From positions 1,240,001-1,304,000 of the forward strand of contig OX337233.1 of the NCBI GenBank assembly GCA_946965045.2: 64,000 bases of DNA. The letters run 5' to 3'. A program made the translations under genes and the position numbers. Position 1 is the stretch's first letter, and each line of letters begins with the position of its first letter. Origin of the DNA: Epithemia pelagica (lineage: Eukaryota; Protista; Bacillariophyta). Under the pieces are notes generated by a model. The model saw only the letters and a program-made list of their open reading frames with translations, ran no database searches and was not told the DNA's origin. This document shows, in pieces, positions 1 through 61,749 of this stretch.

Positions 1-720
1 TTGGCCACACGGCCCACTTGCAACCCCAATTCCCGGGTGGGTACCACAATCAAGACTTGGACCGCTGAACGGCTGGCATCAATGGACGCCAATGCGGGAA
101 GTAAGTAGGCTATCAAAGAAACAAACAATAGTGTGAGACGATAAATTAACCTTTACGACTTGCACCTCCAGACATGAACTCACAACACTTCCTTCCCCTC
201 AAGCTAGAACAACAACCAATCTCTTACCTAATGTCTTGCCGCTTCCCGTCTCGGCCTGAATAATCACATCATTCTTTTCACATACAATCTCATTCAAGGC
301 TTGTTGTTGAATCCGAGTAGGATGAATCCATCCCAAATCCAAGCATCGTTGCAACAGCCACGGAGGGAGTACGGAATCATACAATTGGGCAAAGGTCTGA
401 TTGACCAAAATTCCATCTCCAATCATTTGCGAGGCTTGCAACAAGACGCAACCTCTTGCGGGATTCTTCTTGCGATAACACAGACCATCGTGATACAGGA
501 TAGTTTTGCTTCGGCGAGAGCTTGTCGTCGTTCGCACATTCACACTGTGTGTGAATGCACCGCTTTGGCCGTGGTATGGCGGCTGGAATGCCCATGCTGC
601 ATCAATCAACGGCGCTTGAACAACGAAAAAGGATGAAATGGAAAGGAAGGTGACAGCAAGAGTCCAGCATTTCCAGGAAACGACGACAACCACAATCGTA
701 ATCTTCCACAGAAGCAACAT
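1..720 (-). CDS. DEAD-box RNA helicase, 5' part (runs off the left edge); probable plastid-targeting presequence
   Basis: Q-motif region (HPTRIQQQAL) and motif I (AETGSGKT). A GT-AG intron at 227-110 joins to AYLLPALA...VLIVVPTRELGLQV (motif Ia). ATG at 720 is followed by a hydrophobic stretch ending AWAF, resembling the diatom ASAF motif. Confidence 0.85.
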
Positions 721-1044
721 CGAAATGGACTTGAATGGTGATGGATGGGCAAACAAAAGAAAAGGAGATGCCGCGCGACTCAAGATCTTTGAAGCGACTG
801 AAGGGCGGTCTATTGGCATCAAAAAATCGACTTGCACCTCCTTGCACGCACCCTATGACTGTGACGTTTGTAGTTGGATCATCGTCGAACAGCAAAGAAA
901 TCATGGAGCTCGCCGCAACAATGAGCAGATTCGATTTCATTCTTTGTCGGCAGGCAAACGTCGAAAGATATCGTCGAATCTTGTCTTGAAACTCCCTGTG
1001 GTGCACTCACTTATTTCTGAAACTTTGATCAGCACCAAACTACA

Positions 1045-1641
1045 ATGGCTTCCCGATTGTTGCAATGCGGCCTCATGGCAGGAGCCGGTGCTTTTGTCGA
1101 GACCAAGTACGGTCCGTCCATCCAAATGACTGGTCCAGCAAATACCAGTCCCTTGTTTGCTGCTACACCGTTGGTATTCATTGGCCTTGGCTTTTTTACG
1201 GTCGCTTTTGGTCTCAAGGTTGGTAAAGCTCGGATGACGTACATGGAAAAGGCCAAGAAGGATGGAGAAGAAAATGTCGAGGAACGATATGGTTTGCCCA
1301 ATTTGTACGCTCAAGGCACGTCACCGAACGCCAAGGCCTTCAATTGCATACAACGAGCTCATCAACACATTTTTGAAAACTATACCTTTGCCCTCGTTTT
1401 TGGATTGGCCGGTGCCCTCGAGTTTCCCATTGCCTCGGTCCTCTCTTCTGCGGTCTATGCCGCTGGCCGCATGATTTTTTCCTCCAATTACAGTCAGGCA
1501 GATGGGGAACCCGGCAAACGGTACTCGCTCAATCCTCTGGCCAAACACATGTGGACTGGACTTTTGGTGAACTTTTTCTTGGGTGCCTTTAGTTGTATCA
1601 AGATTCTCGCCAAGACACGATTGGCTCTTGCAGAAAACTAA
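1045..1641 (+). CDS. MAPEG family protein (microsomal glutathione S-transferase 3-like)
   Basis: 198-aa ORF with GLPNLYA...FNCIQRAHQHIFENY and several hydrophobic helices, matching the MAPEG FNCxQRAHQN motif. Confidence 0.85.
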   Translation: MASRLLQCGLMAGAGAFVETKYGPSIQMTGPANTSPLFAATPLVFIGLGFFTVAFGLKVGKARMTYMEKAKKDGEENVEERYGLPNLYAQGTSPNAKAFNCIQRAHQHIFENYTFALVFGLAGALEFPIASVLSSAVYAAGRMIFSSNYSQADGEPGKRYSLNPLAKHMWTGLLVNFFLGAFSCIKILAKTRLALAEN

Positions 1642-52000: not shown

Positions 52001-54912
52001 GCTACATCTGACGCCCGGAGGTGGAATTCTATTCTTGGACTATCAGGAGGTGCTCTGAATAACCGCAAATGCTCCTACCATTTCCTACATTACACGTTTA
52101 CCATGGATGGCCTTGCCACTCCTACTGCTGGAAGCTTCGGCCCATCAATTACAATTCAATTTACACCATCGGAACAGCCACAAGCTCTGAGACAATTGTC
52201 CGCATTTGCTAGTCACAAGACTCTCGGAGTACAAAAAGCTCCCGCCTCCACAAACAAGAGTCTCTATGAAGCCTTGCAAAAGAAAAATAGAGCACATGCA
52301 CAGGTCATGGCCCGAAGTCCGTTTACTAAACGCGACGCTTGGGCATACTACCACTCAATCTACCTGCCCAGCATTACCTATCCATTTCCCTCCTCCACAA
52401 TCTCCAACGAGAACTGTGACAAACTAAAACGGCTGTTCAAATCTGCCTTCCTCCCCAAATATGGCTACAACCGTAACATGCCGAACGCCGTAGTGTATGG
52501 TCCTACGGAATATGGTGGCTTGGGACTGCGAACTCTATCTACCGAACGAAGCATTTCCCAGATTTATACTTTTCTTGCTTGCCTTCGGTCACCTGGCGTT
52601 GCTTCTGATTTGTCTCAGATAACTGTGTCCTGGGGCCAATGCCTTGCCGGTACTAGTTTTTCCATTCTATCGAACCCTCATCCATCCCTTCCCTATTTGG
52701 AACCAATGGTGTGGCTGCCTCAAGTACGCGAGTTTCTTGCAAAAATTGATGGTGGAATTGAGCTGTCAAACGACTTCATCCCTCAACTACAACGCACCAA
52801 TGACAAATTTCTTATGGATAAGGCGATTACAGGGATTTTTACGGATTTGGAACTACAACTTGTGAACGCTTGCCGTTTGTACCTCGGCGTAACACTCCTG
52901 AGCGACATCACAAACCCAAAAGGAGACTTGGTCGAATCCTTTGCACTACAGGGACTGGCTCCGTCAACTTCTACTGAGAAAGGGTTACGCCCGTATCAAG
53001 AGAGACCTAGCACTTGTGCTTGGACTCTATGGCAAAAACTCTTAGAGCAATTCACGACGCTTTCGTTTCGTGGCCTCACTCTGGAAACTCCCCTTGGTAA
53101 ATGGCTCGTGACGGGTCCCAATACACACCGACTATGGAAAGAATACCTTGTCCCGAGCGAAGCTATGCTGTATCGAACAAACAACAACGGTTACACATTG
53201 TGCATGTATGTACATTCATCCTTCGTACCGACGACACTGACAACACAACAGCTTCCTACAACTGCAATCCCAGTAAGACCGTTCCTAACGCCGTCGGGTA
53301 TACACTTCTGCCTTACCAATCTGCACCCGACACAACTACTGCCCCTCGATTACCCACATTCGAGTTGTTTGTGAAAGACTTACCTACATGGGAACGACAA
53401 CTCCTTCACGGATTTCGTCTCCTGTGCTACATGGACTACCTTCTCACTGTCTTGAACACTTCCGAGACACTTTCCCTTGTCGCTTGTAGTGACGGGTCAG
53501 CTCCCCAATTCACTGGCACTTTTGGTTGTATCTGCAGCACCGACGATGGATCCCGTATATTTGGCCTCAATGGCCCCGCACCTGGCTACCGTTCAAATTC
53601 TTTCCGAGCCGAAAGCTACGGCTTCCTTGCTTTGCTCCGTGTGCTTATTCGGTTGTGCGAATATCATGCCTACAATTTACCTCCATCCCTAATAATCTAC
53701 ACCGATTCCGAAAGTCTTCTGAAGACGATCTCTAAGAGACTGGAATGGACTCTGGACTTCCCTTATAGCACTATGCATCCGGATTGGGATTTACAGCAGA
53801 GTATTACCTCTTCTCTACGGCAATTTACCACCATGCCAGCCGCGGTTCATGTCAAGGGACATCAAGACCGCTACGCTCCGTTCGATACTCTTTCTCTACC
53901 AGCCCAGCTCAACGTTGAAGCGGATACGTTAGCAGCTGAATACGTCTATTCAGACGAGGTATCCCACACTCACGCCCCTCTGATCACTGGCTCTACTGCC
54001 ACTTTGCGAACTCCCAAAGGTACAATCCACTCCAACTATAGATCTGTTCTCCGGCATCTTGCCCACGATCCTACGATCCGCCATTATCTCTGTAACAAGT
54101 TCAAGTGGACTCCTACGGTTCTTGATGAGATTGATTGGACATCTCATGGGACTGCCAATCGAGCGTTTTTCTCCCGTCGTCACTTTATATCCAAATTCAT
54201 CTTCGAATGGCTTCCCCTCGGAAATCTTAAATCCCGATACGCAGAATACTATGTCGATCATTGCCCGGCTTGCTCTACTCCAATTCTTGAGGATGCAGAG
54301 CACTTTCTTCGGTGCCCTAGTCGGCGCTCCTGGACCGGACCTATGATGGACGATCTTCGCTCACACTGGGACACTCAATCTGTCGATCCGCAACTTCAGA
54401 CCCTGTTTTCTGACTCGCTTCTCCACTGGCTCTCAGATACTCCTCTTCCCAAATCTTATCCCAACTATCTCCAACCACTCATCACCTCCCAAACCATCAT
54501 TGGATGGAAACAAATGTTTTACGGCCGCCTCAGTCTCTACTGGGTCCGCCTCCAAGATTCTTATCTCCTCTCTCAGGATTTTCACTCACCCAAACTGCGA
54601 GGATCTCTCTTTGTTTCTGGTTCGATCAAGATCCTATGGGCACACTTGCACAAACTTTGGATTAAACGCAACGAAGACACCCATGGTTCCAACCCTGAAA
54701 CTCAAGAAGTCGCAGCTTATGCCCAGGCTCAACGCGAAGTAGAGGCGCTGTATGATATGCGCCACCTTGTACAACCTTCCGACCACTCTCTTTTCTATTC
54801 ATCCCTCGAACAACACTTTGCCACCGACACTACTTCCATCTCTCTCCGATCATGGATCAATACATGGCGTCCCGTCATTCATCGCTCTGCACACTACAAT
54901 ATAGCTATCTAA
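49004..54912 (+). pseudogene. LINE B ORF2: APE endonuclease + RT + RNase H + CCHC, one frameshift near 53300-53350
   Basis: FRLFGANTNG, LLFGDFNE, RIDYVL, DHR; STSPSGFHL, RLRVIHLYEQDYN, DATACYDRI, FVDD; then another frame with CSDGS, FRAESYG, HVKGHQD, CPAC...EHFLRC. Confidence 0.9.
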
Positions 54913-55278: not shown

Positions 55279-55413
55279 ACTGGTTTCGCCGACAATACGG
55301 ATTTCGAAGCGGTCAGCATTGTATATGCCGGAAACAAGGAAGACTCTATTTTCGTTATGCAATGTGGAAGCTAGATTCTTGAACCTTGAACACGTGAAAC
55401 AAGCTTTAGGGTC
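55279..55413 (+). pseudogene. 3'-end remnant of a paralog of the M8 peptidase gene
   Basis: TGFADNTDFEAVSIVYAGNKEDSIFV matches TGFPDDSDREAVSVVYAGNKEDSMFV (38387-38512); shared downstream AACACGTGAAACAAGCTTT. Confidence 0.8.
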
Positions 55414-55598
55414 TTGCTGAGTACTGGAGGAGCCTATGGGAGTCGGACATACTCCCTTTCTCATAGCCATCCTAGCTTCAAGTGATTGAAAAGCGACTAA
55501 TGTGCGCTCCCTATGCCCACCGCGTCGTCCGCCCAACCATTCATCAAAACACACAGAAGCAGGCGAGAACAGATAAAGAACCTTGTGCAAGCCATACC

Positions 55599-58500
55599 AT
55601 GAGTACACCAGGAATTGAGAAAGCTAAGGAGGACAAGTCTGCAGGTGGAAGCATCCTAAATGCCATCCCTGGAGAAGCGCTGGAATGTGGCACAAGTTTG
55701 GCAGAAGGAGAGTTTTGTGGCAGCCTTGCTCCCACCCCACGCTTGATTGACAAATCGGGTAACCACAATCACAGCAGCCACCATTTCAAGGCTCTGCAAA
55801 AGCTGCAAACCACCACCCTTTCCTCTGTCCATGAACTTCGAACGTCCTTGAGTCAAGACATGATATTTGGTAGGATCACCGATGGAGCTACAGCTTCCGG
55901 TATGGAAGTCGATACACAGGAGGAAGCAACAGTGCCCTTGCCTCTGTCGTACTCGACGTTTATATCGCCCTTTGAAGCAACTCCATACACCAAGAATGGT
56001 TCCAAAATAAACACGCATCATCAAATACCACAAAAACTACAGCTTCCTCTGGTTTATTGTGATCACACGGCATCGAACCGTCCCGTCGCTAGTCTGGAAC
56101 GCTATTTGCAACAAGAATGTTTGCCATGGTACGGCAATACTCATACGAATACCAGTTGGACAGGGTCGCAGTCCACAGCCCTCGTGGCCGAAGCACGACA
56201 ACTTGTTGCCGAAGCTTGCAATGCCAAAATTACCGGCAAGGCCAGTTTGGATGTCGTCCTTTTCACGTACGTAAATGGATTTTGTATCTGGAAATCTCTT
56301 GCAACCTTTTTGAATTGATTTCAGGATCAAATAGCGTCCTCACACTTGACTAACGCTTGCTTCGCGTTCATTTCATTCCTCTCGTTGTCCTTGTTTCGTG
56401 ACAGTGGAAATGGTGCGACATCGGCGGTCGAGTTGTTAATTGATTGTCTGGGTGTACGGCATGCAGTTGCCACCTCCTTCTCTTCTGGGACAAACAATCC
56501 TATTAGTGACAACCAGCCGGTTGTCTTTGTGGGTCCATACGAACATCATTCCAATCTTATTCCTTGGCGAGAATCCGGATGTCATGTGGTCATGGTACCA
56601 GAGAGTACAGAAACTGGACAAGTGGATTTGAAAGCACTGGAACACTTGTTACAACAGTATTCCTCGAAACACCAGCAAACCTCGCGACTTTTGATGGGTG
56701 CCTTTTCGGCTGCCTCTAATGTTACTGGAAAGGTGACGGATGTGTCGGCCGTGGCTGCCTTGTGCCATAGATATGGTGCATTGGTGTTTGCGGATTATGC
56801 CACGGCTGCTCCCTACTGCTCCGTCAATATGAACCCAACCATTCGGGATGTCCAGAACACGAGCAAGTTTCAATACACAGACAAGGACGATATTGGTCTG
56901 GATGCCTTGTTTTGGAGTCCGCACAAATGTTTGGGTGGTGGAGGGGGGACACCAGGTGTATTGATTGTTAAGAAACCGTGGGTCAGTCAAGCGAATGCTC
57001 CTCACAAGTCGGGTGGAGGGACTGTCTTTTATGTCACGGATACGCATCATCGATTCTTGAGCAATCGGGTGGAACGGTACGAAGGTGGGACACCTCCTGT
57101 GGCTGGGATTTGGCGATTGGGACTCTGTATCTTGCTCAAACGACGCGTCGAAGCCATGTATCAACAGCTTGTTGAGACTGACCAACAAGGGACGCAAAGC
57201 AATAGACAATCGAGCAACCTTGACAACCCACAATCACTGGCATTTCCACCCATGGACCGTTTTCCACCCACCATTGAAGAATTTGACCACCAAACACACT
57301 ACCGTGTAATGCAATACCTTGGCGAACATGCTCCCAATCTTGTACTTTTGGGACACAATAAGACGAATCCTTCTTCATCAGTCCATCAAGATCACAAACA
57401 ACAAAATTTACCAATCTTTTCCTTTCTAGTTCGATGGGGTCCGCGCTTTTTGCATTTCAACTATGTCTGTGCCATTTTAAATGATTTGTTTGGCATTCAG
57501 ACCCGCGGTGGATGTCAGTGCAGTGGACCCTACTCGCAACGCTTGTTGGGATTGAATCGTCCAGCAAACACTGACGATGGGGAAACTGTCAATCAACAAG
57601 TGGAAGAGGCCTTGGTTCTCTACAAAGAACGTGCCGAATTGCTGCGACCAGGCTATACCCGGCTGAGCTTGCCCTTTAAGGGGTTGACCTCCGAGGAAGT
57701 GGAATACGTCGTTAAAGCTTTGGTTTGGGTCTCCAAACATGCGTGGGCGCTCATGTGTCAATATCGTTGCAATGTATGTATCTTTGTTTATTTCAGAAGG
57801 TTGCTGTGTACTCTTTGATTCTTTCTCACTGTCTACCGTTGTTTCGATCTTTTTATCTTCCAAACGTCCCTTGGCTTTTCACGTCTTTGCGCCATTAGCA
57901 TCGAACTGGCGAGGTACGGTTCATCTGCCTTTTGCTCTTTTCTTTCCTTAACTATTCCCTAATGGCATTGTTGTGTTGCTTGTTCTGAAGTGGAGACATG
58001 CGGCGAGACAGGGAAAGCCGCTGGGTAGAGAGGAAAGACGATGGCTGAGTCACTACGATCCGTTTGATTCACGGTGGGGACACGACACACCCACGGCATC
58101 CATTGTCAAGAAATCTGCGGAGAGAGAGTCTCTAAAAGAAGTACTGGATCGCACCTTGTTGCAAGCCGACAAAATCTTGCAAGCTGCGGTGAACGACCAG
58201 CGAAGTATTGCCCAGACGATAAAAATGGTCGATGCCCATTCGGTTCTTGGCGACGACGATTGCCTGGAACGGTTGCGTTGGTACGTTTACCCGAAAGAAT
58301 GTGCTTTGCACTTTAAGCAGCATGGTCTAGGAGGTGGGACCAAGGATTCTTTCTCGGAACCGCTATTGGGTGCGGTAAACCCCTATCTCAACGCGGAATC
58401 TTGTTCCACTGAGAGAGCACCTTATTCGTCAGCAGCTACTACTGAGCAATTACAATCGGGGAGAAAGAGAAAAATGGATGTCGAGGATACCGCTAGCCGA

Positions 58501-60006
58501 TTAGCCGTCGAGAAAGATGAAGAAAGCAATATTTTTACCTTCCGAGACGGCGAACATCATCAGGGAGAAGCTTCTCTGGATGAGATTGAAGCAGGAATTG
58601 ACGATGGTGAACTGTCCGAGCAAGCGGAGGTGTTTGTAAAGGGCGAATGGGTGAATGCAGCAGAGTTCGTGCAGGGCTTACCAAAGCCACAAACCGAAAC
58701 AGTCAAAACACCTGAACACGAAACCGTGGTTTCTCATAAGAAAAAGGCTCCTCGAGATCATTCCATGTGGGGGAAGGGCGAGGTGGCAGGTGCGCCATCT
58801 GTTTCATCAAAAGATGTACAGGACATTTCTGTGGATGCAGTTGTTGTACCTGATGATGAGAGAAAACAAGCGCCTACGACAACAAAGAAAAAGGGAAGTC
58901 GACATGTCAAGCCGCCTCCCAAACTGATGCGGTTGGTGACCCAAGCCGTCTTCCAATGGGATATGATCCAAGAAGGAGACAGACTGCTCCTAGGACTAAG
59001 CGGGGGGAAAGACTCACTCAGCTTACTTCACTGCTTGCTTGAATTGAAGAAAAAGTTGCCCACAAAGTTTGAACTTGAAGTGTGCACCATTGACCCAATG
59101 ACGCCCTCATTTGACCCCTCTCCGCTGATCCCATATGTCGAGCAAACCCTGGGCTTAAAGTATCACTACGTTCGCGATGATATTGTAGCAAGGGCATCTT
59201 CGGCGGGAAAGGATGGGAAAATGGTCTCCTCGCTGTGTGCTTTTTGCGCTCGAATGAAAAGGGGCAATCTCTACAATGTGGCACGTCAGAGCAAGTGCAA
59301 CAAGTTGGTTCTGGCACAGCACTTGGATGATTGTGCCGAGTCATTTCTCATGTCGGTAATGCATAATGGTTTCCTACGGACAATGAAAGCAAACTACGAA
59401 ATTAATGCTGGTGACTTGTCGGTCATTCGACCAATGGTCTATTGTCGCGAAAGCCTCATGACCGAGTTTGCCAAACAAGCCAAATTACCCGTCATTAACG
59501 AAAACTGTCCCGCCTGCTTTGAGGAACCCAAAGAACGTGCACGTGTCAAGAAGCTCCTCAGTCGGGAGGAGTTGAACTACCCCAATTTTTATGACAACAT
59601 TCGACGATCTCTGTTGCCCCTTATGCACCGGGAGTCTGAGTGTGTCATGCACAGCTTTACCGAAGAAGCTGTCGCCAAGAGTCGAAAGAAATGGACACCG
59701 AGCAACAAACGGGCCAAGCCCAATGGTGCGAATGCTGGTGATACGGTCGTCTCGGGAGAATCCTTGCAGAGTGTCACTCTTCCGGACCGACCATCCAGTG
59801 ACACGACGGACCAAGTGTCCTCCCAGACCAGGCCAACATTGTCAGAGTTGTCGGCGTTTAGTGACGAACAACTCATGGCAGAGCTGTCTCGAAGAAAAGC
59901 GGCTCGTTTTCGCCTGGCCGGTGCAATGAAGTCCAACAAGACAGAGATTGGATCCTCGGACAAAATGCTGTGCAATGTCGGTGGTGCATGTTCACTGTTC
60001 GACTAG
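55599..60006 (+). CDS. Fusion protein: class V aminotransferase / cysteine-desulfurase-like + TtcA-type tRNA 2-thiocytidine synthase (4 exons, about 1355 aa)
   Basis: Exons 55599-56266, 56405-57773, 57899-57913 and 57991-60006 splice in frame. YCDHTAS, YGNTHT, EHHSN, SAASNVTG, DYA, SPHK (PLP Lys), RGGCQCSGPY; then SGGKDS PP-loop, CAFC, AQHLDD, IRPM, ENCPAC. Confidence 0.88.
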
Positions 60007-60206
60007 CGTGGTGATTGGGTGTTGTCTGCGCGTTCTCTATCCTTTCGAACCTATCAATAGAGCATCTCTCTTAGACTTTTTTGACAAGATTGATCGAGTA
60101 GTAACCTTTTATCGTTGGAGTGGTGATCGTTTCCTCTCTAGAGTAGCCGTGTGTATGACAAGTATGTCTAGCGATTATGAAAAACGCGAGTGTGAATATT
60201 GTTCCC

Positions 60207-61586
60207 TTAGCCGTCTACGTGAGGTCGTAACAGCATTCCACATCGTCGTCGCCACCGGGAAAAGCCCCATCGACGACTCCCCTTGCATCGATTTCTCCAG
60301 AGTTGTTTTTCCCGTGCCGGCAATGCCAGCAGTTCAATCGCTTGATCAATCGTGGGATCGTCCACCGTGGTCAAATCAAAGTCGTCGTCGTCGTCGTCGT
60401 CATCCCGAGTCCCCTCCAGATCATCGTCGTCGTCAAGAAAAGAAGGCGTTTCATCCTGTTCCTGTTCATTGGTACGTTCTTGGAAGCCAGTCATTTCCAA
60501 CCGTGTCGCCGTTTCTGGTATTCGGACGGCATCGTGTGTGTTGGTGGAACGCTCGTTTGGAAGAGAAACGGAATCGGCAGGACAGTCCATCCAAGTACCA
60601 GTCTCCAACTCTACCCCTGTTACGAATGGTGATGGTACGTCTTCTTCTTCTTGCTTTCGATTCTGGAAGAATGGTCGGGATTGATTGAGGTTGTACGAGG
60701 CTAGAAAGTCTTGGTCGAATCCAGCAAGACTTGTCGCGTTGGACCCACGGTTTCTCGAAATGACGGAAGACGATGTTGATGTTGTTGTATTTGGACTAGA
60801 CACGTCAAGGCTACTCCAAAGAACCACCGACAAGACGACAACGAGAATCGCCACAAGAACTACCACCATCCGTAGTTGATCCGACACTTGGTTGGTTTGG
60901 GTTGGGTTGCAACACCGTGGCGAGTTGGGCGCGTTCCTCTGGCATTCCTTCGAGGACAGGTCGGTGACATCTTCTTCTTCTTCTTCATGCTTCACCAATA
61001 CAATGGATGCTTCCGACTCGAAGAACGAAATGGTTTCCGTGGTGGGGGTTGTTTGACTCGTGGTGGTGGTGCAGGTGCCATTGGTCGGACACGCATCAAT
61101 GTCCAAATGGTCGTCATCGTCATTATCCTCTTGGCTATCATCTCCCAGTGAACATTCTTGTTCGGTAGTTTCCTCCGCATCGTTCGGTTTCTCCTCCTCC
61201 TCCTCCTTGTTTGTCATGATACGATCCACATTGACCATGCGAACAGGAGGATCCTGGTCCAGTGCCGTCGTCGTGTTGTTGTTGGACGACCGCAATCGTT
61301 CCAGGTCTTGTTCGGCTTGATTCAAATCTCGTTGCAATTCATCCAATTGCAAGTCTTCCAGACTCATCCAACTCCCACTCCGTGCCCGTTGTGGTTGCAC
61401 GAGACGACGATTGGACGACCGCAAAAAGTCCAATTCTCGTTCCAAATCTTGTGCGGCATGATGCAAGGTATCCTCCAACGAAGTAGTACACGTCGTCGTC
61501 GTATTGGATCGGTCCAGTCCTGCTGCAGCTTCTTGTTGTTCTTGTTGTTTTTGTTTTGGATGAACGGCCATTGTGTCGGTGGTCAT
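60207..61586 (-). CDS. Hypothetical acidic, low-complexity protein with coiled coil and one TM segment
   Basis: Long ORF with heptads (LERELDFLR, LEDLQLDELQRDLNQAEQDLERLR), TM VVVLVAILVVVLSVVLW and poly-D/E/T tracts. Confidence 0.65.
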   Translation of the reverse strand: MTTDTMAVHPKQKQQEQQEAAAGLDRSNTTTTCTTSLEDTLHHAAQDLERELDFLRSSNRRLVQPQRARSGSWMSLEDLQLDELQRDLNQAEQDLERLRSSNNNTTTALDQDPPVRMVNVDRIMTNKEEEEEKPNDAEETTEQECSLGDDSQEDNDDDDHLDIDACPTNGTCTTTTSQTTPTTETISFFESEASIVLVKHEEEEEDVTDLSSKECQRNAPNSPRCCNPTQTNQVSDQLRMVVVLVAILVVVLSVVLWSSLDVSSPNTTTSTSSSVISRNRGSNATSLAGFDQDFLASYNLNQSRPFFQNRKQEEEDVPSPFVTGVELETGTWMDCPADSVSLPNERSTNTHDAVRIPETATRLEMTGFQERTNEQEQDETPSFLDDDDDLEGTRDDDDDDDDFDLTTVDDPTIDQAIELLALPAREKQLWRNRCKGSRRWGFSRWRRRCGMLLRPHVDG

Positions 61587-61749
61587 GCTCGGTTGGAGAG
61601 ACTGTGACTGTGACGATGACACCACGCTCCACACTTCGCGTTTTGTCTTTGGTTGGCACAAGGGAGAAGAAGAAATTTGGCTCGGTTTCAGTTTCCACAG
61701 CCACTGTGTCTCGGGTTCAATAAAACGGTGCGTACGAGTTCAATTCTCT

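Follow-up and report, generated by a model that had tools for sequence, protein, structure and literature searches.

We analyzed a 64,000-nucleotide (nt) stretch of the genome of the diatom Epithemia pelagica (assembly GCA_946965045.2, contig OX337233.1, positions 1,240,001 to 1,304,000; hereafter the window), which carries on its forward strand a four-exon gene whose product joins a cysteine desulfurase-like enzyme, dependent on pyridoxal 5'-phosphate (PLP), to a TtcA-like PP-loop domain. The gene is an orthologue within a pan-eukaryotic fusion family, and as a discovery it is confirmatory rather than new. We consider it probable that the product is one bifunctional polypeptide in which a type II desulfurase serves a TtcA-like thiolase, with 2-thiocytidine at position 32 (s2C32) of cytosolic tRNAs as its most likely product.

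The four exons join in frame into the protein of about 1355 residues that the original prediction had proposed: joined by script, they comprise 4068 nt, or 1355 codons plus a stop, with zero internal stops (the joints were read from positions 55400-56500 and 57650-58150 together with a list of open reading frames [ORFs]). Exon 4 provides 671 codons without a stop and carries the linker of about 300 residues between the two halves, and the HRTGE residues encoded by the micro-exon are kept in homologues. Window DNA was found in four public sequencing runs, all from one study; three hold the unspliced genomic form, and run X4 yielded a single 4197-nt contig that aligns in three blocks (55557-56266, 56405-57773, and 57989-60093), with CATCGAACTGGCG between the last two. 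Its joints correspond exactly to the predicted splicing across the whole coding sequence, the 15-nt micro-exon included; the aligner merely placed the final AG of the micro-exon onto the AG that closes intron 3. None of the four runs bears an RNA label, and we regard the X4 contig as cDNA derived solely because the introns are absent from it; such contigs are assemblies, which neither amount to single-molecule proof nor define 5' ends. This is one gene, expressed as a single spliced RNA form, in agreement with the single transcript that had been anticipated, and no separate transcripts were seen among the contigs of the public runs.

The two modules, the linker, and the termini

The N-terminal half had been described as a class V PLP enzyme with an SPHK lysine and an RGGCQCSGPY loop, and both motifs are present in a region that matches the Pfam family Aminotran_5 (E=1.5e-23 in exon 2; profile positions 1 to 59 align with the end of exon 1). 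The further suggestion that it is SufS/CsdA-like held for alignment and fold but not for curated scores: the best NCBIfam model is the SufS subfamily, at 74 bits versus a cut-off of 475, and the CsdA equivalog reaches 46 bits versus 494. BLASTP against the proteins of Escherichia coli MG1655 aligned this half with SufS (25% identity over 321 residues, E=4e-13) and CsdA (E=5e-11) and gave no significant match to IscS. A hidden Markov model of 159 family members matched SufS residues 21 to 368 at 139 bits, CsdA at 102 bits, and IscS at 43 bits; in this alignment the HK of the family pairs with SufS K226, and the loop RgGCqCaGPy pairs with RTGHHC364AMPL of SufS and RAGQHC358AQPL of CsdA. When a profile of 78 diverse N-terminal halves was compared with the PDB, SufS entries were recovered with E values as low as 1.8e-47 in alignments crossing the catalytic loop, and IscS/NFS1 entries only at about 1e-13, in alignments that end before it. 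An AlphaFold2 (AF2) model of the N-terminal half of the closest orthologue (P0151:133-812, 75% identical to the window protein in that region) has a mean predicted local distance difference test score (pLDDT) of 88.2 and a predicted template modeling (TM) score of 0.90, and all of its top 50 Foldseek matches in the PDB are SufS-type desulfurases (TM score by target, 0.74 to 0.83). On account of these profile scores, the PDB profile search, and the structural comparison, we assign the N-terminal half to a distinct family within the type II (SufS/CsdA-like) desulfurases and not to the IscS type.

Among the 78 homologues, the invariant residues are an H, a D, the S-H-K lysine motif, an R, two Cys, and two Arg. 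Both C595 and C593, the second invariant Cys of the RGGCQC loop, belong to this set, and H270 and H271 of the EHHSN motif, together with R590 and R642, are invariant or nearly so. Every catalytic residue checked in the two modules is conserved. The E. coli enzymes SufS and CsdA (PDB 1jf9, 5db5, and 4lw2) share with the window module the fold, the PLP lysine, an EHH(A/S)N motif, the position of the R-x-G-x-x-C loop, and a C-terminal Arg. The window module is nevertheless only about 20 to 25% identical to them, has GGCQC in its loop rather than GHHCA, and contains insertions and, C-terminal to the SufS fold, a structured segment of about 150 residues that has no counterpart in SufS; moreover, it is fused to its presumed sulfur user, whereas SufS and CsdA work with SufE or CsdE. 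The SufS-type assignment, with C595 as the candidate catalytic Cys, is new in this analysis.

The C-terminal half contains the motifs originally noted in it, LMRLVTQAVFQWDMIQEGDRLLLGLSGGKDS (whose last residue is aa 1026), CAFC, and CPAC, and belongs to the PP-loop family PF01171 (E=1.1e-13). Of the NCBIfam models, TtcA scored highest at 191 bits (2.5e-56), followed by TilS-N at 57 bits, NcsA at 31 bits (cut-off, 500), and TtuA at 26 bits (cut-off, 450), so that TtcA leads any other PP-loop family by more than 130 bits. The matches to Aminotran_5, the PP-loop family, and TtcA lie well outside what chance would produce. In an alignment with E. coli TtcA (31% identity over 236 residues, E=1e-35), C1100, C1103, and C1193 correspond to C122, C125, and C222, which were shown to be essential and proposed to be [4Fe-4S] cluster ligands (PMC4081106). 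Inspection of the protein sequence revealed no Cys between aa 823 and 1031 and thus no zinc finger before the PP-loop, as had been observed originally; CxxC...CxxC zinc fingers are absent on both sides of the domain, beyond which there is only a C-x5-C tail. Foldseek placed the AF2 model of exon 4 closest to NcsA, TtuA, and TilS among solved structures, which is the fold of [4Fe-4S] tRNA thiolases; NcsA and TtuA appear as the nearest structures because no TtcA structure has been deposited.

The C-terminal half is TtcA-like and not CTU1/Ncs6/TtuA-like, which bears out the preference for a bacterial-type TtcA expressed in the original prediction. It shares with E. coli TtcA the PP-loop, the three cluster-ligand Cys, and the lack of zinc fingers, but the E. 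coli protein is a standalone enzyme of 311 residues that depends on separate IscS and IscU. CTU1/CTU2 (Ncs6/Ncs2, served by Urm1/Uba4), NcsA, and TtuA have the PP-loop/[4Fe-4S] thiolase fold class in common with the window domain; unlike it, enzymes of the CTU1/NcsA/TtuA type have zinc fingers, a ubiquitin-like thiocarboxylate donor, and 2-thiouridine at position 34 (s2U34) or 2-thioribothymidine at position 54 (s2T54) as product.

The linker between the modules is long and poorly conserved, and AF2 predicts disorder at aa 822-862 and 920-978. Between these segments lies a folded module of about 50 residues found only in diatoms and a few other members or relatives. Its similarity to GYF_2 (E=0.13 in the window; hits in 16 of 37 orthologue segments, the best of them at 2.3e-4) or to Kelch motifs (hits in 10 of the 37) is weak. 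Both termini carry conserved Cys-bearing motifs. At the N-terminus, 50 of 151 members have the LECGTSLAEGEFC pattern within their first 120 residues, and the other 171,911 residues contain it a single time. The protein ends in CNVGGACSLFD, and a C-x(2-10)-C pattern is present in the last 30 residues of 98 of 159 members, compared with 23 of 159 in a control segment, the last Cys lying 4 to 5 residues from the end in 79 of those 98. After filtering at ≤70% identity, 18 of 42 members retain the tail, and those that can be named are ochrophytes and myzozoan alveolates; it is absent from the oomycete-like members, Choanoeca, and Rhodelphis in this set. The tail has a pLDDT below 50 and follows a conserved helix (aa 1309-1328). 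The terminal motifs and the folded linker module are likewise new in this analysis. Cytosolic iron-sulfur (Fe-S) assembly clients can carry a C-terminal targeting tripeptide of the form [LIM]-[DES]-[WF]; we considered the C-terminus as such a signal and rejected it, since the ends SLFD and ELME do not fit.

The window protein is predicted to be cytosolic. Its first 60 residues include 8 acidic and 5 basic ones, and hydrophobic runs within the first 80 reach no more than 3 residues; the N-terminus is neither signal peptide-like nor presequence-like, consistent with the earlier observation that no targeting peptide is evident. In orthologues, the spacing between the start and the N-terminal motif is similar, and visual inspection revealed no obvious presequence. 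An in-frame ATG at 55500-55502, 33 codons 5' of the chosen start, would add a basic, presequence-like peptide (MCAPYAHRVVRPTIHQ...), but it is probably not used, because it lies outside the cDNA contig. The acidic N-terminus without a hydrophobic run, the similar starts of orthologues, and the start of the cDNA contig 3' of this ATG together point to the cytosol. The coordinates of the gene and its features are collected in Table 1.

Table 1. Features of the fusion gene and its product (nucleotide positions in the window; residues in the 1355-aa protein)
Feature	Position	Residues	Strand	Remarks
Whole coding region	55599..60006		+	4 exons, 1355 aa plus stop
Exon 1	55599..56266		+	Poorly conserved acidic N-terminal region, then start of class V fold; ends in phase 2
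Intron 1	56267..56404		+	138 nt, GT..AG
Exon 2	56405..57773		+	Core of SufS-like PLP domain
Intron 2	57774..57898		+	125 nt, GT..AG
Micro-exon (exon 3)	57899..57913		+	15 nt; encodes HRTGE, part of conserved YRCNHxTGEWRH hairpin; letters present in X4 contig
Intron 3	57914..57990		+	77 nt, GT..AG
Exon 4	57991..60006		+	End of desulfurase module, linker, TtcA-like domain, tail; one open frame
Intron-less X4 contig	55557..60093		+	Gives at least 42 nt of 5' and at least 87 nt of 3' untranslated region
N-terminal motif LECGTSLAEGEFC	55680..55718	28-40	+	Conserved among diatom orthologues
SPHK		394-397	+	Motif with PLP lysine
K397	56925..56927	397	+	PLP Schiff-base lysine of SPHK; aligns with E. 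coli SufS K226; invariant in 78 homologues
RGGCQC loop (in RGGCQCSGPY, aa 590-599)	57504..57521	590-595	+	C595 aligns with catalytic Cys of SufS (C364) and CsdA (C358)
Structured C-terminal extension of desulfurase module	57684..58338	~650-800	+	Introns 2 and 3 within; conserved LRWYVYP motif; ordered in orthologue AF2 model
Linker module FRDGEHxGEA...DGELS...W	58531..58680	865-914	+	AF2 pLDDT 94-97; strand-strand-helix-strand-strand-helix
TtcA-like PP-loop ATP-pyrophosphatase domain	58891..59658	985-1240	+	AF2 pLDDT >90
PP-loop SGGKDS	58999..59016	1021-1026	+	Invariant in 42 homologues
CAFC (C1100, C1103)	59236..59247	1100-1103	+	Aligns with E. coli TtcA C122, C125
CPAC (C1190, C1193)	59506..59517	1190-1193	+	C1193 aligns with E. 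coli TtcA C222, third cluster ligand
Tail cysteines C1345, C1351 (CNVGGAC)	59971..59991		+	C-x5-C, 4 residues from C-terminus; segment predicted disordered

Distribution and origin of the fusion family

A HMMER search with exon 4 recovered 364 cluster representatives (E<=1e-30), many of them proteins of 950 to 1650 residues with the match at the C-terminal end, and a word-indexed search with a 1302-aa orthologue (P0001) recovered 665 proteins (E<=1e-10), among the best 120 of which nearly all contain both PF00266 and PF01171. The matches listed include diatoms (Epithemia clementina, Seminavis robusta, Nitzschia, Pseudo-nitzschia, Skeletonema, Thalassiosira, Fistulifera, and Mayamaea), Triparma, and the oomycetes Phytophthora, Aphanomyces, and Lagenidium, to which cluster look-ups added Chrysoparadoxa, Amoebophrya, Chromera, Vitrella, Besnoitia, Cryptosporidium, Choanoeca, and Rhodelphis. 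A further search with the Choanoeca protein extended the family to Monosiga and most animal phyla: sponges, Trichoplax, cnidarians, echinoderms, hemichordates, amphioxus, tunicates, molluscs, annelids, brachiopods, tardigrades, chelicerates, crustaceans, and insects. Octopus and Penaeus proteins are also direct matches of the window exon 4. The closest relative is the E. clementina protein, with 65% identity over the full length and 93% in the TtcA domain, and the window protein has the features of the family, namely, Aminotran_5 followed by the PP-loop, the C-x-C loop, and C...CxxC...CPAC.

The rarity implied by the original prediction did not hold, as the fusion is widespread and automatically annotated in diatoms, oomycetes, alveolates, choanoflagellates, and animals. 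Many matches of the Choanoeca search are auto-named "tRNA-cytidine(32) 2-sulfurtransferase" or "TtcA"; orthologues bearing the former annotation occur in Seminavis robusta (where the name appears as "cytidine(32) 2-sulfurtransferase"), Nymphon, Frankliniella, and Trichoplax. Given this distribution, which extends from diatoms, oomycetes, and alveolates to choanoflagellates and most animal phyla, the enzyme appears to be ancient and to have been widely retained among eukaryotes.

We also considered whether the desulfurase half exists as a standalone paralogue, and rejected this candidate: the PF00266-only matches, of about 720 to 790 residues, nearly all end after LRWYVYPK followed by V, and appear to be pieces of the fusion, truncated where prokaryote-style gene callers read into an intron. 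A run of database proteins (P0347-P0366, many of about 730 residues) has the desulfurase domain only and ends just past LRWYVYPK plus V. The pattern suggests that an intron is conserved after LRWYVYPK in centric-diatom orthologues.

2-Thiocytidine (s2C) had been considered a tRNA modification of bacteria and archaea before a preprint of 28 September 2026 mapped it in a mollusc and pointed to the fusion (bioRxiv 10.64898/2026.09.27.754811). Its authors detected s2C32 in Aplysia tRNA-Lys-UUU by mass spectrometry and state that there was no earlier evidence for eukaryotic s2C from liquid chromatography-tandem mass spectrometry; the original prediction had called s2C not generally described in eukaryotic tRNA. 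The same preprint describes the 1177-aa Aplysia californica protein LOC101861551, which combines CsdA and TtcA-like domains, under the name "IscS-TtcA," and reports that the fusion is conserved in 28 molluscs (with birds and insects given as data not shown), as are the PLP lysine, a Cys-x-Cys, and a C...CSFC...CPAC pattern. The catalytic Cys was not identified there because the N-terminal half was compared with IscS; the SufS/CsdA alignment presented here places it at C595. The Aplysia and diatom proteins agree in domain order, a long and variable linker, the PLP lysine, C-x-C, SGGKDS, and C...CxxC...CPAC; the diatom protein differs in its length of 1355 residues, its lineage-specific LECGTSLAE motif, its folded linker module, and its C-x5-C tail. 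Our literature search returned no further paper on the fusion: an oomycete domain-fusion survey (PMC2705460) does not mention it, and a search for TtcA together with apicomplexa gave primer-string matches only.

To place the TtcA-like half among prokaryotic homologues, we scanned one genome per bacterial and archaeal species with a profile of 42 TtcA-like domains. The best matches were standalone genes encoding about 260 residues, 48 to 55% identical to the window domain, almost all from sulfur-oxidizing Gamma- and Betaproteobacteria (Thiofilum, Acidithiobacillus, Thiohalomonadaceae, Chromatiaceae, Thiotrichaceae, Halothiobacillus, Hydrogenophilales, and Thiobacillus), followed by Campylobacterota and Clostridia at 32 to 38% identity. 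The window domain is much nearer to these proteins of sulfur oxidizers than to E. coli TtcA (31%). The closest bacterial homologues score 191 to 223 bits on the TtcA model, under its 272-bit cut-off. These bacterial genes (loci L005-L062) are exemplified by the standalone TtcA-like gene of Thiofilum flexile (L005:2947-3726). When the ORFs neighboring the TtcA-like genes were clustered across 58 loci, no conserved desulfurase or sulfur carrier emerged; the commonest neighbor families occur at 45, 19, and 14 of the loci.

A quick maximum-likelihood tree of 73 sequences (LG+C20+F+G4, rooted on E. coli TtcA) united all 42 sampled eukaryotic TtcA domains, including those of the window and Octopus, in one clade (support of 99 in the Shimodaira-Hasegawa-like approximate likelihood ratio test [SH-aLRT], the only support measure used). 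This clade is nested within a larger one that contains the proteins of sulfur oxidizers (SH-aLRT, 97), and the sequences of Campylobacterota, Clostridia, and E. coli fall outside it. The bacterial sample was picked by two motif patterns, E. coli TtcA forms a long branch, and the tree was built without a CTU1/TtuA outgroup. The topology agrees with the fused domain having arisen once, from a gene of proteobacterial type, and the single eukaryotic clade beside standalone homologues of sulfur oxidizers is a further new result of this analysis.

A candidate sulfur relay and alternative explanations

We infer the two activities, the substrate, its position, and the route of sulfur between the two sites from the comparisons above, and the relay they suggest would run as follows. 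In the N-terminal module (about aa 146-800), L-cysteine would bind PLP on K397, and C595 of the RGGCQC loop would accept its sulfur as a persulfide. In the C-terminal module (about aa 985-1240), C1100, C1103, and C1193 would hold a [4Fe-4S] cluster whose free iron, the one that is not protein ligated, would receive the sulfur. ATP would adenylate the C2 oxygen of the target pyrimidine, and displacement of AMP by sulfur would yield s2C, with position 32 of tRNA as the likeliest site. The fusion would thereby free the pathway from a separate IscS-type donor. Residues K397, C593, C595, C1100, C1103, and C1193 and the tail cysteines offer themselves as mutational targets.

For the transfer from C595 to the cluster iron, we put forward a speculative scheme that we regard as doubtful: the Cys-bearing disordered termini, with the LECGTSLAE motif at one end and the acidic/hydrophobic-C-x(3-9)-C tail at the other, might act as swinging arms that move the persulfide, C593 possibly aiding, so that C593 and both termini are candidate sulfur carriers. 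If this were true, the termini would replace the separate SufE, SufU, or TusA carrier of type II desulfurases. We know of no tRNA thiolase for which a complete intramolecular sulfur relay has been described.

Several points weigh against a bifunctional enzyme that forms s2C32 in the cytosol. For every member of the family, both activities are predictions drawn from what is established for SufS and for TtcA/TtuA-type enzymes, and the Aplysia study (10.64898/2026.09.27.754811) offers co-occurrence of the fusion and s2C32, not genetics. The domain scores 191 bits against the TtcA equivalog cut-off of 272 (NF007972), compared with 514 for E. coli TtcA; because both it and its nearest bacterial relatives (180 to 223 bits) fall below this cut-off, functional equivalence to characterized TtcA is not assured, and we use the label TtcA-like in a broad sense only. 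Type II desulfurases normally depend on SufE, SufU, or CsdE as acceptor, and no such partner is apparent here: Pfam and NCBIfam scans found no acceptor-like domain in the polypeptide. The location is predicted from nothing more than an acidic N-terminus that lacks a hydrophobic run, and although the in-frame ATG at 55500 lies upstream of the start of the X4 contig at 55557, contigs of this kind do not define 5' ends.

Some of these points are shared by a possible, though clearly less probable, alternative in which the protein is a genuine thiolase with a target other than C32 of tRNA, be it a different position or nucleoside, some other RNA, or a small molecule. Neither the domain nor its bacterial sister clade reaches the TtcA cut-off, the domain is only about 31% identical to E. 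coli TtcA, the sister clade of sulfur oxidizers is uncharacterized, and enzymes with the PP-loop/[4Fe-4S] fold make s2U34, s2T54, s2C32, and even non-RNA products (LarE). However, TtcA remains the best model by more than 130 bits over other PP-loop families, and s2C32 has been found in an animal with an orthologue (10.64898/2026.09.27.754811). It is rather unlikely that the desulfurase serves instead to build or repair the oxygen-labile [4Fe-4S] cluster of the TtcA module, or that the polypeptide is cleaved in the linker and its halves function separately. The oxygen sensitivity of the TtcA cluster (PMC4081106) and the long, poorly conserved linker with its predicted disordered segments (aa 822-862 and 920-978) are compatible with such schemes, and cleavage was raised as a possibility in the Aplysia preprint (10.64898/2026.09.27.754811); against them, no protease site and, among the contigs of the public runs, no separate transcript was seen, and the fusion has been kept across very long evolutionary distances with a C-terminal half of single origin, which therefore favors coupling in cis.

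The two remaining explanations concern the identity of the gene itself, and neither fits the data well. That the fusion is an artefact of two adjacent genes, one desulfurase-like and one for TtcA, is very improbable: the Logan contigs are assemblies and alone are no single-molecule proof, but the stop-free codons of exon 4 join both halves, one spliced contig spans everything, and more than 100 orthologues, complete transcriptome ORFs among them, share the architecture. Least probable of all, to the point of being negligible, is a C-terminal half that is a thiouridylase of the CTU1/Ncs6/TtuA type. Although NcsA and TtuA are the closest solved structures, this is only since no TtcA structure is available; their models score 31 and 26 bits versus 191 for TtcA, zinc fingers are missing at both the N- and C-terminal sides, and a tree built without CTU1/TtuA unites the domain with TtcA-like proteins of proteobacteria. 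A bifunctional desulfurase-thiolase acting on C32 of cytosolic tRNAs thus remains the explanation that we favor.

Sequence variation and neighboring reading frames

At position 56977, runs X2, X3, and X4 have G where the window has C; the difference falls on the middle base of codon 414, replaces Pro with Arg at a site of low conservation, and is probably allelic. Directly upstream of the fusion gene lies an intronless ORF of 603 aa (53101-54912, + strand), for which no Pfam match was found at E<=0.01. On the other side, a convergent ORF of 484 aa (60207-61661, − strand) is rich in acidic and Thr/Ser low-complexity sequence and gave no Pfam match; this region is probably transcribed, because a second X4 contig starts at 60152.

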